The notes beneath the pieces were generated by a model. The model was not told the origin of the DNA. It saw only the letters and a program-made list of their open reading frames with translations, and did not search any database. The position numbers and the translations under genes are program-made. Shown here one piece after another: positions 29,712-36,398 of a stretch of DNA of 64,000 bases; position 1 is the stretch's first letter, and the number at the start of each line of letters is the position of its first letter. The stretch is taken from the sequence record LC819006.1; one strand, given 5' to 3'.

Positions 29712-30608
29712 ATGCTCGATCAGAGCTTGGACAACTTTTTGGAACAGGCATTGCCACCGGAGAAGTACCGCCTCTACGTGGACATTATCTCCTATTTGGA
29801 GAGCATAGAATACGACACCATCGAGAGTGAGCTACTCAATCTCATCTACATGTCGATTGGCGACGAGAACGAAAAGGTTCCGAAGCCTGAGTCGACCTGC
29901 GTGGATGAAATCTACGGTCACCTTCGCGAGTGTATGATCTCCCAACTTTCGCAAAGCGGTATCGTCGCGAATGAAGAGGTCAAGCTAAAGGATGTGTACG
30001 ATTTGGCCATCGGCCTTTTCCACATCTCCACTCACGAAGACATCGCAGGCATTGTTGCATGCTGCAGTCTCGATGAAGCCCCGATCCACCAACTGGCTGA
30101 AGTACTCCAGCTGGTGACGACGGTGAGCGCCGATCACTGGATGACAGTCATCGACGAAATTCAACCCGAAGTCATCGACAAGATTGTCGAGATGAGTAAA
30201 GAGACGATCAACTCCGAGTATCAAGTAATGGAGGAGACGGCTGAATATTTACAGAAGATCCGGATCTATTCCGAGTACTGCGTCAAGAAGGGAATGATTG
30301 ACCTCAAAGTCTTCAATCTCGTCTCGAATGTCGTGCTCGGACAGAACTACCAGACGTATCTGGATTCTGGTGTGATCCATGAACTCTTCGAAGGCGATCA
30401 GATGGAACGATTGGCGCTTGAGATGTACGGCATGGCGCTGATGTCCAATGATGCTTCGAAGGATCCGGTCGGAGCTATCCGAACTGTCATCGAGTCATAT
30501 ATCGAGGACACGCGTCGTATTGTCGACTTGAACTCGAAAGTGCAGCTGGTCAATGCCGAGTTCGTCAAGTTCTATCAAACCACCAGCCAGGGCCTGAACA
30601 ATGGATAA
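29712..30608 (+). CDS. conserved phiKZ-like protein (gp79 position)
   Basis: AAGGAG RBS before MLDQS; overlaps the start of the vRNAP subunit gene. Confidence 0.62.
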   Translation: MLDQSLDNFLEQALPPEKYRLYVDIISYLESIEYDTIESELLNLIYMSIGDENEKVPKPESTCVDEIYGHLRECMISQLSQSGIVANEEVKLKDVYDLAIGLFHISTHEDIAGIVACCSLDEAPIHQLAEVLQLVTTVSADHWMTVIDEIQPEVIDKIVEMSKETINSEYQVMEETAEYLQKIRIYSEYCVKKGMIDLKVFNLVSNVVLGQNYQTYLDSGVIHELFEGDQMERLALEMYGMALMSNDASKDPVGAIRTVIESYIEDTRRIVDLNSKVQLVNAEFVKFYQTTSQGLNNG

Positions 30609-31899
30609 ACGTGACTTTTTCATGCTCTGCATGAAAGAACACAAGTATCGGGATAAGCGCTGGGTGCTACGTGCTTTCGCTTTGGTGCGGGAGAACAAGA
30701 CACCCGAGACGTCTAAACCTCTCGACATCATTCAAACGCCTGCCGGACACTTCTACAAGCATCCGGAAACCGGCGAACTCGAACAGATTCGTGGTGCGGT
30801 CAAACCTGGAAAGCCGATGTATGGCGTCAAGGAAAAGCTCACCGTGAAGAAAGGAGAGTTGCCGGGTATTCTCAAAGATGAGGAAACTGACTACGGTCGT
30901 ATTCTCTACTTCTGCATCGTCTTCCTCCATTCGTTTGACGGGCATGTGCCCTTTAAAAACCAGCAAATGGACATGGGGAAATTCGAAGATGAACTCGCAG
31001 CGAAACTCCAGGATGATGTTGAACCTGGACAAGAGGAGAACCCGGCTCTATTCTATCCTCGTCAGCTCGTACGTTATTACGAAGCCATGGCGTACACCCG
31101 CGGCCTGGCAATGCTGTGCGTACCCGCTGCTTCTCCGGCCTCAATGACCATCGATCCTAAGGTCTTGAAGCGTCGTGACGAACTGTTCAACGATCCGAAC
31201 ATTGACCTGAACAATCAGGCAGTGGCGGCTTCGGTGGAAAAGGAACTGGTGGACATGGACCGCGATTCGTTCAAGGACGATTCGGCCTCCGGCTTCCTTA
31301 TCAACAAAAAAGACTTCGCGGTTATCCGCAAGAAGCGTTTCATTTCATTCGGCTCGGGGGCTGGCCTCACGCCTGACTCCAAGACTGCGTACGTTAAACG
31401 TAGCTTGAACGAAGGTGTGGATGTAAAACAGTTCAAGGACTACAACGATGAAATGCGTACTGGCTCGTATAAACGCGGCGTTGAAACGATGTTCGGTGGC
31501 GAACTGGACAAGTGGCTCGTTCGTGAGTCTTCGAACATCAGGGTTCTTCCGGATGACTGCGGTAGCACTGTCGGTATTCCGACCCTCATCAACGAACTCA
31601 ATCAAAACCAGTGGATCGGCTTTAACATCGTCGAAGGACGAGGCGTCAATAAGCTGAGTTCCGACAACATCGGCACTTATATGGGCAAGGTCGTTCTGCG
31701 ACGGTCTCCGGCTGCATGCTGGGCACCGAAGCCTGACTATTGCACGGTGTGCCTGGGCGAAAAGCTCTCGATGAACCCGGACGCAATTTCCATCGCGTTC
31801 TCGCAATACGGCCACGACTTCATGGGCGAATCCATGTCCGCAATGCACGGCAAATCCTTGTCGATTGCTCGGATGGATCTCGTGGCAGAAGCTTCTTAA
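30601..31899 (+). CDS. virion RNA polymerase beta'-like subunit, C-terminal part (phiKZ gp80-like)
   Basis: DDCGS and LRRSPAACW...YCTVCLG zinc site of RpoC C-terminal regions; FMGESMSAMHG. Confidence 0.8.
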   Translation: MDKRDFFMLCMKEHKYRDKRWVLRAFALVRENKTPETSKPLDIIQTPAGHFYKHPETGELEQIRGAVKPGKPMYGVKEKLTVKKGELPGILKDEETDYGRILYFCIVFLHSFDGHVPFKNQQMDMGKFEDELAAKLQDDVEPGQEENPALFYPRQLVRYYEAMAYTRGLAMLCVPAASPASMTIDPKVLKRRDELFNDPNIDLNNQAVAASVEKELVDMDRDSFKDDSASGFLINKKDFAVIRKKRFISFGSGAGLTPDSKTAYVKRSLNEGVDVKQFKDYNDEMRTGSYKRGVETMFGGELDKWLVRESSNIRVLPDDCGSTVGIPTLINELNQNQWIGFNIVEGRGVNKLSSDNIGTYMGKVVLRRSPAACWAPKPDYCTVCLGEKLSMNPDAISIAFSQYGHDFMGESMSAMHGKSLSIARMDLVAEAS

Positions 31900-32890: not shown

Positions 32891-33751
32891 TTAGGCGTAA
32901 TTCATCTTGCGCGCTTTACGATTCTGCTTCTTGATGCGGGCAGAACGCTGGCGACGATTCTTCTGATGCTCCTGGTTATCCAGGCGTGCTTGTGTTGCGT
33001 AGTTCTCACGCTCCACATGCTTCACAGCACCAGCGAAGTATTGGTCGATGCCACGCTCGAAGAACTCATGGCGAACGCTATCCCAGCTAGTCAGGTCTTC
33101 GTCTTCCCGACACATGTCGAACGGAACAGCGCAGGACATGACGACGCTTTGCGAGATGGGACGACCAAAGAATTCCAGGATAGCAATGGCCATACATTCG
33201 CAACGATCAGCATAGTGCAGATGCTGTCGATGACGATACAGAACGCCATTCAGATTCTTGATGCGGAAGTGATGTTCCACGAACTGCATCAGATCCATGC
33301 CGATGGCCTGCAAGCCTTTGCGACCAGAGTGCTCGATGATTGCCTGCATACCGTGCATCATGATGACTGCGTAGTAGTTGGGCATGTACTGGCCGATGTA
33401 GTGCGGCTTCGTGCAAGCGCCTTCGTAAGCGATCATTTCATCTTCGATCTGATCGAGTACACCCTTGGTAAAGCGAACCAGAGAGAAGTTGTGGATCTTG
33501 CTTTGTTCGACGAACTTCTTCAGGTTGTCCTTGAACGCATCGTACTTCAACTGCTGTGCGCTACGTTCTCGGCTACTCGCTAGAGCAGCTGCGTGAAGCA
33601 AGCGTTTGAGTTCACGCTTGTCTTTACGCGACATTTTCTTTTCTTTCTTTGATCTCTTCTCGGCGATCACCCACTTGAACGCGATGACAACGATCAAGAT
33701 AAGCAGACCCACCAACCCCACAGCGACGGCATTCGGATTATACATTTTCAA
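32891..33751 (-). CDS. membrane-anchored hypothetical protein
   Basis: N-terminal hydrophobic helix AVAVGLVGLLILIVVIAF followed by a strongly basic segment. Confidence 0.7.
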   Translation of the reverse strand: MKMYNPNAVAVGLVGLLILIVVIAFKWVIAEKRSKKEKKMSRKDKRELKRLLHAAALASSRERSAQQLKYDAFKDNLKKFVEQSKIHNFSLVRFTKGVLDQIEDEMIAYEGACTKPHYIGQYMPNYYAVIMMHGMQAIIEHSGRKGLQAIGMDLMQFVEHHFRIKNLNGVLYRHRQHLHYADRCECMAIAILEFFGRPISQSVVMSCAVPFDMCREDEDLTSWDSVRHEFFERGIDQYFAGAVKHVERENYATQARLDNQEHQKNRRQRSARIKKQNRKARKMNYA

Positions 33752-33768
33752 ACTCTTCTTGGTTTATG

Positions 33769-34173
33769 TCATTCAGGAATGTAGGAAAGAACTACGTACG
33801 AAATACCAGGTTCGAGACCGATCTTGTCACCCAGAATCGGAATCAAGCTAATGCCGGCCAAAGTCGACAGATAAAGCGCAGTCAGCCCAGCCTTGTCGTC
33901 TTCGAAAGTGCATTCACAAGTGAAAGCGCCATCGTCTTCGACAATTTTGCCAGCCACGATACACTGGCTAAAATCCGTTTTGGAGGGATTCTTCTCCCGG
34001 ATGTACTGCTGGAGGGCATAGGCCAAGCGAGCCGATCTAGGACCCTCGTTGAAGGCCGCAAAGTGCTTCCTCCACTCATCTACGGTGGTCTCGTACTCCG
34101 GCGGCAGAAAAATGTCCACGACCTGGGAAGTACGAGACCGGATAGTCTTTTGAACTAACCGGTCAAGACTCAT
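33769..34173 (-). CDS. hypothetical protein, 134 aa
   Basis: GAGGAG RBS; starts 1 bp after the ACP-like stop codon. Confidence 0.7.
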   Translation of the reverse strand: MSLDRLVQKTIRSRTSQVVDIFLPPEYETTVDEWRKHFAAFNEGPRSARLAYALQQYIREKNPSKTDFSQCIVAGKIVEDDGAFTCECTFEDDKAGLTALYLSTLAGISLIPILGDKIGLEPGISYVVLSYIPE

Positions 34174-34174
34174 A

Positions 34175-34450
34175 TTACTCCTCGTTCAGATGCTTAATTA
34201 CCTTGTCAAAGACGTCCTGCCAGGTAGCGAACGGGCCATCGAGAAATCCGATCTCCAGTTCATCTTCCAGTTCAGACATGATGTCCATGTGATCCAGCGA
34301 ATCCAGATCCCCGCTCTGGAAAGGCAACGCCAGGAACTCACGGAACTCCGTACTGTTCTCGACCGCGGTCTTGCGAACCGTTTTCGTGTCGTACGACGAT
34401 ACAACTTGGACGAGCACTCGACGTGCCTTCTGTGCTTTGGCCTCAGCCAT
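34175..34450 (-). CDS. acyl carrier protein-like protein
   Basis: GDLDSLDHMDIMSELEDELEI and ATWQDVFD align by eye with ACP helices II and IV (DSL phosphopantetheine motif, Ser51); 91 aa, acidic C-terminal half. Confidence 0.7.
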   Translation of the reverse strand: MAEAKAQKARRVLVQVVSSYDTKTVRKTAVENSTEFREFLALPFQSGDLDSLDHMDIMSELEDELEIGFLDGPFATWQDVFDKVIKHLNEE

Positions 34451-34547
34451 TTTAAAAACCCCTGCTTGTTATTACTGTTACTGGTTTCGGTCGAAAACCA
34501 AATAATCAGTCTCGCTTCATAAAGCCTCAAAAAAATAAGTAGACAGC

Positions 34548-34586
34548 AAAAAGGGCGGGACAGAGTGGCCGAAGCCACTCCATCCC
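34548..34586 (-). terminator. intrinsic terminator with a cUUCGg loop and U-tract
   Basis: Minus strand reads GGGAUGGAGUGGC-UUCG-GCCACUCUGUCCC GCCC UUUUU. Confidence 0.8.
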
Positions 34587-34589
34587 ATG

Positions 34590-35075
34590 CCTAAGATGAA
34601 ACTGAACTTACATCCCTAGGTCGTCGCATCACCACAAGGAAATGACGAGTGACGACTAAGGGCTATAAGCTTTGCAGCGTTTCCCAACGGATGCGCTACC
34701 TATAACTGGTCCCGAAAAGACCCCTTACAATCGATGCGGGCTTAATACACACGAAGGCCAAACGACGTCCCCGCAAGCGCGAACGCGCGCGCCAGCGATT
34801 TACGTCAGGCATCACTAAGTCCTTAAAGGGAAACTCATATCGGCGGCACTAAGAGGCGGCCATGAGTCGTGATCTTCGCGCAGCTTAGAGCAGTAGTATC
34901 GAGACTCTGCCTTCACCACATACGACGTGTGTATTTCGCGGGCCTTTCACCCGAGTCAGGATATATCGCGCAATCGCACCATCCCGACCTCTGCCTCGAA
35001 CAGATCTTCAGAAGCCATGTTGTTAAAGAACGAGACGGCTAACCAGTCCCTCACGAGATTAGGTTAGCCGCCAGA
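34590..35075 (-). ncRNA. candidate large structured non-coding RNA, family unknown
   Basis: About 480 nt with no ORF-track entry; many stems, GNRA-type loops and G-U pairs on the minus strand; a perfect 10-bp long-range pairing (34744-34753 with 34926-34935); ends at the terminator. Confidence 0.6.
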
Positions 35076-35081
35076 TCACGC

Positions 35082-36398
35082 TTACGGTTGAAGCGTGTCG
35101 GTTTGATCAGCAGCTGCTGCGCCGTCCGCATCAGCCTTCACGTCGGTAGCCGCCGGCGTTTGGACTTCTGCTTGAACAGCAGCATCTGCGACTTCAGCGG
35201 TCGGGGCAACGTCGGCGGGAGCAGCGACTTGTTCAGCCGTTGCGTCCACTGCCGGCGTTTCCGCGGCCGGAACTTCTGCCTGCGCTTGTGCAGCGTCGGT
35301 TTCCACCGGCGCAGCCGTTTGCGCTGCGTCAGCAGCTTGTTCCACCGGAGCAGCATCGACCGGAGCGCCTGCGAGTGCAGCTGCCGTTGCCGGATCTGCA
35401 TTCACTTCAGGCGTTTGGGCCAGAGCTTCGGGCGAGTGATCGACTTCTTGCGAAGCGTCACCAGCCGGAGCGGCTGCTTGTTCCACAGCGGGAGCTTCAG
35501 CTTGAGCAGCATCAGCTGCCGGTGCATCTGCCTGCACTGCGGGGACTTCCGGTGTTGCTTGCTCGCCAGCGGTGGGGTCGACTTCCGGGGCAGCTTCTTG
35601 AGCCACGCCTTCGTCGGCTACGCCAGCCGGTTGAGCTTGTTCAGCAGCAGCGTCTTCCGGCCCAAGCTGCAGCTGGTACGGAACTTCGGCTTGTGCATCT
35701 GCTGCGGGAGCGTCGACTTGCGGAGCTGCGTCAGCCGGGGCTTGAGCTTGCGCTTCGCCTGCGGCCGGGTCCACTTCTGCTGCTGCGGGTGCATCTGCGG
35801 GCTGTTCCACTGCCGGTGCAGCTTGTTCAGCCGTACCTGCATCCGTGCCCGCTGCCGGATCTTGTTCGACGGCCGGAGCATCGCCCGTCGGTTGTGCATC
35901 ACCAGCCGATGCGTCAGCTGCGGGAGCAGCATCTGCGCCAGCGTTGTCTGCCGGTTGGTCAGCTTGTGCAGGAGCGTCGCCGGTCGGCTGGGCTTCTGCG
36001 GTACCTGCGTCGTCAGCAGGCGCTGCGTCTACCGGTGCTGCATCTGCGGGGGCCGCGTCAGCAGGTGCCGGATCTTGAGCTTGATCACCAGCGGCAGGAG
36101 CCGCGTCTTGCGATTGGTCGCCAGCTGCGATCTGGTTGTCCAGGTCAGCTGCTGCTGCGCCAGCGGCTGCGGCGGCTGCCGTACCGTTGTCACCCAGACC
36201 GAGTGCTTCGTTTGCGGTGTCGCCGAGACCTGCGTCGTCAGCGGGTTGAACCACGACCGGGGTCGTTGCGTGCTTTTCGCCGTGCTTGTGGAACAGAGCG
36301 ACGACGTGTGCAACTGCTTCTTCCGGCAGGGCTGCCAAGGCTTCGAGAGCCAGGAGCTCCACCTTGAGTTCTTCGATGGCTTTACGGATGATACCCAC
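35082..36398 (-). CDS. acidic low-complexity protein (Ala/Asp/Pro/Gln/Glu) with a short helical N-terminus
   Basis: GTG start with AAGGA RBS; about 390 aa almost free of basic and aromatic residues; PAADA / PAVEQ-type repeats. Confidence 0.75.
   Translation of the reverse strand: MGIIRKAIEELKVELLALEALAALPEEAVAHVVALFHKHGEKHATTPVVVQPADDAGLGDTANEALGLGDNGTAAAAAAGAAAADLDNQIAAGDQSQDAAPAAGDQAQDPAPADAAPADAAPVDAAPADDAGTAEAQPTGDAPAQADQPADNAGADAAPAADASAGDAQPTGDAPAVEQDPAAGTDAGTAEQAAPAVEQPADAPAAAEVDPAAGEAQAQAPADAAPQVDAPAADAQAEVPYQLQLGPEDAAAEQAQPAGVADEGVAQEAAPEVDPTAGEQATPEVPAVQADAPAADAAQAEAPAVEQAAAPAGDASQEVDHSPEALAQTPEVNADPATAAALAGAPVDAAPVEQAADAAQTAAPVETDAAQAQAEVPAAETPAVDATAEQVAAPADVAPTAEVADAAVQAEVQTPAATDVKADADGAAAADQTDTLQP

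Follow-up and report, generated by a model that had tools for sequence, protein, structure and literature searches.

The gp210 gene of the RSL2-like jumbo phages encodes a small protein that, judged by its predicted fold and by remote homology, is a diverged and genuine member of the acyl carrier protein (ACP) superfamily. Because the cofactor serine is freely replaced in sister phages, gp210 probably docks onto proteins and is probably not a fatty-acid carrier. We lean towards the reading that it is a cofactor-independent ACP-fold docking protein or decoy, with a client of the host ACP as its preferred partner. The gene was analyzed within a window of 64,000 nucleotides (the whole stretch of LC819006.1 examined here), and the features referred to below are the following.

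34175..34450 (minus strand): gp210, the ACP-like gene, assigned from the ORF list, a 100% match to gp210 of FLC8 and FLC4-11C, phrog_31629 and the predicted ACP fold
34256..34300 (minus strand): predicted helix II of gp210 (residues 51-65), counterpart of the ACP recognition helix, from DSSP, column counts and the alignment with PDB ACPs
34459..34463 (minus strand): AGGGG, a Shine-Dalgarno-like sequence 8 nt 5' of the gp210 ATG; the GGGG/GGAG block is conserved in relatives
34556..34587 (minus strand): terminator-like hairpin with a 14-pair stem and a T-run after it, from a consensus scan
34178..34183 (minus strand): GAGGAG, putative ribosome-binding site of gp209 within the last two gp210 codons, from the junction sequences
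33769..34173 (minus strand): gp209, 134 aa with an invariant PPEY motif, from synteny in all loci, alignment and model
32891..33751 (minus strand): gp208, 286 aa, third gene of the conserved trio, from its ORF, phrog_36615 (function unknown) and conserved position

Gene identity, fold and remote homology

The gp210 ORF, which the first-pass annotation had reported without a strand, lies on the minus strand and runs from ATG to TAA, encoding 91 aa plus the stop. It is 100% identical to FLC8_gp210, annotated as 'hypothetical protein', and to its copy in FLC4-11C. Over bases 33000-36000 the window is 100% identical to Burkholderia phage FLC8 (LC667450) and to Ralstonia phage FLC4-11C, whereas the matches to FLC6, RSL2, RsoM3USA, RSF1 and SURPRISE13 are at 82-97%. 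All of these are RSL2-like (Chiangmaivirus) jumbo phages of ~225 kb, and the annotation of SURPRISE13 includes a putative nuclear-shell protein, a tubulin-like protein and split multisubunit RNA polymerases, which points to the phiKZ-type nucleus-forming lineage. We recovered at least 23 gp210 homologs with 34-100% identity, nearly all of 91 aa (one has 93, and one cluster representative 80). The family is small, comprising 17 plus 7 further clusters in word-based and exhaustive searches, and is confined to RSL2-like phages, with IMG/VR contributing only RSL2, RSF1 and one further genome. It has a PHROG of its own (phrog_31629, E 2e-59). The start context GGGGTTTTTAAAATG is kept in relatives, where both the ribosome-binding region and the start codon are conserved, and by its dN/dS of 0.04-0.30 against close relatives the gene is under purifying selection. 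At the level of sequence comparison, the ORF is thereby confirmed as a real gene and not a chance reading frame.

An ACP assignment had been made from a short motif, and this motif was found in gp210 as D50-S51-L52-D53, followed by an acidic amphipathic helix and then by W77. The assignment is borne out as far as fold and distant sequence relationship are concerned. Structure prediction, which the first-pass annotation had proposed as a check, gave an AlphaFold (AF2) model with the full ACP four-helix fold (pLDDT 87, pTM 0.79) and helices at residues 2-20, 27-41, 51-65 and 77-90. The model fits the description of the carrier-protein fold, a right-turn bundle of four helices in which a long loop joins helices I and II and the helix III region is short. 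The helix at 51-65, delimited by DSSP, is the counterpart of ACP helix II, which in the model would thus start exactly at Ser51. When the model was compared with 48,161 PDB chains by VIA-align, the best 50 matches were all ACP or PCP domains (Z 9.6-6.9, rmsd 2.1-3.2 A, 68-83 residues aligned, span 1-91). Foldseek searches of PDB, BFVD and AFDB also placed ACPs on top, with 8gsa as the best match (probability 0.96, E 0.27), and the E-values were weak, as for a small helical fold; taken alone, the Foldseek result for this model is not convincing. The ESM Atlas neighbours of gp210 are PP-binding clusters.

Profile comparisons led to the same superfamily. With the gp210 family profile as query against PDB sequences, 60 of the 60 matches listed were ACPs (E 0.003-0.3), and the alignments place the D-S-L-D of the family on the D-S-L-D of the ACPs, with helix II and the I-P-D segments also aligned. 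When 1.84 billion representative proteins were searched exhaustively with the profile, the only genuine matches outside the gp210 family were two true PF00550 proteins, at E about 1e-4. One of them, P0028, matches the Pfam model at E 6e-11, and hhalign pairs it with the gp210 family at a probability of 97% and E 8e-11. Two further matches from the representative search, both to large proteins, were discarded as spurious, P0025 being an insect-allergen repeat protein and P0027 being unrelated.

The P0028 protein has 81 aa, contains DSLD and the same I-P-D ... T-W-K segment, and is, among bona fide PP-binding proteins, the closest relative of the gp210 family. It is encoded at positions 2080-2325 of L017, a metagenome contig of 4 kb on which the genes are small and the neighbours include NUDIX and acetyltransferase genes. 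As this contig looks phage-like, the gp210 family may derive from a phage-borne true ACP.

In the curated collections, ACP matches to gp210 were only sub-threshold throughout the Pfam, NCBIfam and PHROG scans. A missing PP-binding HMM hit had been named in the first-pass annotation as counting against its assignment, and no PF00550 match was obtained with either the protein or the six-frame translated genome, even at E<=10. The NCBIfam ACP models (TIGR00517 and PRK00982) gave 13-16 bits, below their cut-offs of 66-71, and the 'acyl carrier protein' family phrog_5934 matched marginally (E 0.009).

Residue 51 and the acidic face of helix II

Ser51, which occupies the position of the phosphopantetheine serine at the N-terminus of helix II, is encoded by TCG at 34298-34300, the first codon of that helix. 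The first-pass annotation described this serine as kept, which is correct for FLC8 gp210 and does not extend to the family. The 23-member alignment is ungapped around the motif; 13 of its sequences carry Ser at residue 51, four carry Ala, two carry Thr, and Phe, Pro, Gln and Leu occur in one each. The same annotation had stated beforehand that lack of conservation of Ser51 in homologs would tell against it, and with 13 of 23 sequences carrying Ser, and Ala in RSF1, the residue is not conserved. A maximum-likelihood tree of the family requires 8-9 changes at this residue, no fewer than with shuffled labels, and the well-supported clade that includes FLC8 gp210 (5 rows, support 98/91) is mixed, with Ser, Thr and Ala all represented. 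In the cultured phage RSF1, codon 51 is GCG (Ala), which differs by one base from the TCG of FLC8 and stands between identical flanking codons; RSF1 thereby represents, by its sequence, a natural version of the S51A substitution that had been suggested as an experiment. Codon 51 is TCG or TCA in FLC8, RSL2 and SURPRISE13, and closely related sequences with Ala51 are also present on two contigs, one of 220 kb from ENA and one of 87 kb from Logan. No alternative serine was found in the loop of the most diverged Ser-less homologs. Since the serine is replaced across the family, the conserved function of gp210 cannot require phosphopantetheine at residue 51.

The remainder of helix II is far more constant. 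D50, E60 and E62 are present in 23 of 23 sequences, D53 and I57 in 22, and D56 in 21, the remaining two having Glu. D50, D53, D56, E60 and E62 form an acidic ridge on the helix that in ACPs is the recognition helix. Based on the alignment and the model, no other exposed feature of gp210 is conserved as strictly as the acidic face of helix II, a conservation that could be partly structural or simply inherited. A relaxed cofactor site together with a retained client-recognition surface, one mark of an ACP mimic or decoy, is seen in the family. Lack of Ser51 conservation and lack of a PP-binding HMM match together favour, in general terms, the 'decoy or mimic' option of the first-pass annotation, and speak against its alternative of an 'acyl donor for phage proteins'. 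The most conserved segment of gp210 as a whole is helix I (residues 1-21).

Many small acidic phage proteins are DNA mimics, and the gp210 family is acidic throughout (pI 4.1-4.8, net charge -4 to -12), with a charge of -12 in the C-terminal half of the FLC8 protein. These values would suit a generic acidic mimic, for instance a DNA mimic or an anti-defence protein, built on an ACP-derived scaffold. We regard this as very improbable, as the charges are arranged as in ACP helix II and do not resemble the phosphate array of DNA, the N-terminal helix carries a positive charge of about +5, and the model has no structural match to known DNA mimics, the best VIA-align matches all being carrier proteins.

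A second alternative is that gp210 is a true carrier. Host AcpS would then attach phosphopantetheine to Ser51, and holo-gp210 would carry acyl groups. It could do so as the product of an auxiliary metabolic gene that boosts or redirects the host's synthesis of lipids, lipid A or signals, or it could donate acyl groups to a phage protein. The D-S-L at the N-terminus of helix II in FLC8 gp210, as in real ACPs, is consistent with this, as are the retention of Ser in 13 of the 23 homologs, the name 'acyl carrier protein' given to two gp210 homologs by JGI, and the existence of phage ACPs as an annotated PHROG family, the weakly matching phrog_5934. Whole-genome searches were run on the FLC8 record, which is identical to the window at the gp210 locus. 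In the whole 225-kb genome, no PF01648, PF00109 or PF00501 domain was detected, and neither were a PPTase, a ketosynthase, an adenylate-forming enzyme, a second PP-binding domain or a paralog of gp210. Nor do the annotated products of SURPRISE13 list a PPTase or other carrier-pathway enzyme; the host has such enzymes of its own. The earlier observation that the window holds no fatty-acid or PPTase gene can therefore be extended to the whole genome. This gene content argues against a true carrier, as do the roughly 8-9 independent replacements of Ser, among them those in cultured RSF1 and in the closest clade, and the scores, with no match to PF00550 and 16 bits for an NCBIfam ACP model with a cut-off of 66. 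Since Ser is kept in 13 of 23 members including FLC8 gp210, a carrier role is possible in some lineages; for the family we consider it an improbable, minor rival.

Operon context and neighbouring genes

The strong terminator-like hairpin at 34556..34587 closes the upstream gp211 unit, and gp210 therefore probably starts a new transcript. The spacer between the hairpin and the gp210 Shine-Dalgarno sequence (34464-34555) contains a T-run and TATG, and the relatives conserve the T-run and CTTACTATGG. A TATG motif is the late-promoter element of phiKZ (PMC7598289), which CTTACTATGG resembles; with four bases, this likeness is only a hint. At the other end of the gene, the ribosome-binding site of gp209 falls within the last codons of gp210, which explains part of the conserved C-terminal N-E-E. 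In 7 of 8 loci, the final codons of the ACP-like gene contain a Shine-Dalgarno-like purine run for the second gene, and the distance between the two genes is -4 to +8 nt, with the exception of 45 nt in the most diverged locus. Based on these junction sequences, gp209 is probably co-translated with gp210. Contigs of related phages from root metatranscriptomes cover 34277-34491 and the gp210/gp209 junction. They are short, few and of low depth, a thin record that is compatible with co-transcription, is not proof of it and may reflect DNA carry-over.

Upstream of gp210 there is an intergenic stretch of ~480 nt (34590-35075), which ends at the hairpin (34587-34556, minus strand). The metatranscriptome depth in the region is highest at 34920-35139, and three runs contain a variant replacing 34805-34919.

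At all recovered loci, a gene of 118-139 aa comes after the ACP-like gene, and one of 244-321 aa after that. All of the genomes are collinear, so the synteny of gp210, gp209 and gp208 is weak evidence for a functional link. The gp209 model (pLDDT 88) is without a clear fold match. It shows a weak, recurring likeness to prohead-protease and assemblin folds (T4 gp21 with VIA Z 6.3, herpesvirus proteases, and HK97-type proteases in AFDB). The alignment of the gp209 family contains no invariant Ser or His, and gp209 may hence be a catalytically dead protein with a protease fold. Its assignment as a prohead protease or assemblin was rejected, as the fold match is not confident and catalytic residues are lacking. 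The layout of gp208 comprises an N-terminal membrane helix, a Lys/Arg-rich linker, a His/Cys-rich globular domain and a very basic C-terminal tail. Searches of Pfam, PHROG and the Atlas gave no informative match for gp208, and a weak match to an Rz-like spanin family was recorded (phrog_2466, E 0.005).

The main rival to docking on a host protein draws on this neighbourhood. The ACP fold of gp210 could serve as a structural adaptor for gp209 and/or gp208, or within some other phage assembly, and would then not engage any client of the host ACP. The order gp210-gp209-gp208 is invariant, and gp210 and gp209 appear translationally coupled, even at 34-37% identity. Such a phage-internal role would also account for helix I being the most conserved segment, which ordinary recognition by ACP clients does not explain. 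The collinear genomes mean that the synteny is not independent evidence, however, and the most conserved surface residues of gp210 are those used by ACP clients. Prediction of a gp210-gp209 complex returned 'no answer' with a score of 0.00; it lends the adaptor no support and counts neither for nor against binding. We regard this explanation as doubtful, and as the strongest competitor of the host-directed one.

Several other genes in the surroundings are worth recording. gp211 (35082-36398, minus strand) encodes 438 aa that are almost wholly Ala, Asp, Pro, Gln and Glu, and gave no match in Pfam or PHROG. Its length varies greatly between relatives, the SURPRISE13 protein having 251 aa, and this suggests an acidic protein of low complexity that expands and contracts rapidly. 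A convergent gene of 432 aa (30601-31899, plus strand) matches phrog_2962 'RNA polymerase beta subunit' at E 1e-149 and is 'hypothetical' in the FLC8 and SURPRISE13 records. By this match, it probably encodes an unannotated subunit of a split phage RNA polymerase, namely a beta fragment. Outside the window, the region 23057-35935 of L004 (SURPRISE13 gp70-gp85; FLC6 gp70-82) encodes a cupin, four radical-SAM proteins, two DHFR-like proteins and two 2OG-Fe(II) oxygenases. The SURPRISE13 gp70-gp85 cluster may represent a nucleotide- or DNA-modification pathway or a small-molecule pathway.

Proposed mode of action and relation to known ACPs

We infer that gp210 acts by docking and that it targets a host client. 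The protein would have kept the four-helix fold and the acidic helix II while losing its dependence on the phosphopantetheine arm. Its conserved acidic face (D50, D53, D56, E60 and E62), together with the highly conserved basic helix I, would bind the ACP-type basic docking patch of a partner, preferably a host enzyme or regulator that is a client of ACP, and gp210 would act there as a cofactor-less competitor or adaptor. It would be made from one operon together with gp209 and the membrane-anchored gp208. Ser51 of the FLC8 protein could still be modified by host AcpS, which would be incidental to the conserved function of the family. Apo-ACP is reportedly growth-inhibitory in E. coli, a finding associated with Keating and Cronan, and a decoy effect of gp210 is thus plausible in principle. 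A more specific version, which we put forward only tentatively and consider rather unlikely in this detail, is that gp210 fills the ACP-docking site of an enzyme or regulator of its Burkholderia or Ralstonia host, such as one of phospholipid or lipid A synthesis or a SpoT-type sensor, thereby rewiring membrane synthesis or signalling, and that this is one case of a recurrent, undescribed phage strategy based on the ACP fold. To our knowledge, Burkholderia and Ralstonia use SMC rather than MukBEF, which makes MukB an unlikely target.

Compared with AcpP and mitochondrial ACPs (PF00550, TIGR00517), gp210 shares the four-helix fold over its full length (Z up to 9.6), the D-S-L-D at the start of helix II, the acidic helix II, an I-P-D-like turn, and small size and acidity. 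It differs in scoring below every curated cut-off, in the lack of conservation of the cofactor serine in its family, in a longer, basic helix I and in an insertion of ~8 residues before the motif. Unlike the situation for AcpP, no partner enzymes are encoded by FLC8. Mitochondrial ACP, which is a structural subunit of complex I and of LYR-protein complexes and is among the best sequence and structure matches of gp210, sets a precedent for use of the ACP fold as a protein-binding module. Binding of mitochondrial ACP to its partners needs the acyl-phosphopantetheine arm inserted into the partner, whereas in the gp210 family the arm appears dispensable.

Small stand-alone ACP-fold genes with an unexplained role are also found in other large phages, as in the annotated phage ACPs of phrog_5934. 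From these gp210 differs by its marginal match and by forming its own phrog_31629, present in RSL2-like phages only. ACP modules are carried by flavobacterial jumbophages (PMC13573597), and in the Eneladusvirus jumbo phages of Erwinia an ACP gene lies near a gene for a spanin-like membrane protein (PMC7760394). The arrangement in FLC8 is similar, with gp210 two genes from the membrane-anchored gp208 and its weak Rz-like match. A direct ortholog, gp207 of SURPRISE13 (GenBank PP856017), is 77-79% identical, has the same synteny and is annotated as 'acyl carrier protein-like superfamily protein'. Given this entry and the two names assigned by JGI, the ACP-like nature of the gp210 family is already public. 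Our literature searches found no paper on the family or on serine-independent phage ACP look-alikes, and the papers on phages SURPRISE13 and FLC6 do not mention the family. Phage ACPs as such are known and unexplained; the polymorphism of Ser, Ala and Thr among close relatives is what is added here.

For annotators, the label 'acyl carrier protein' on members of the gp210 family should not imply lipid metabolism. Bacteria depend on ACP as an essential hub protein, with dozens of enzymes recognizing its docking surface. If the preferred reading of a docking protein or decoy is true, cofactor-independent gp210 would offer a natural means of probing or inhibiting ACP clients in two pathogens of crops, B. 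glumae and the R. solanacearum complex, and would represent a mechanism of host takeover that is so far undescribed, as far as our literature searches reached. If gp210 binds phage proteins instead, a metabolic fold would have been recruited as a structural adaptor in nucleus-forming phages.
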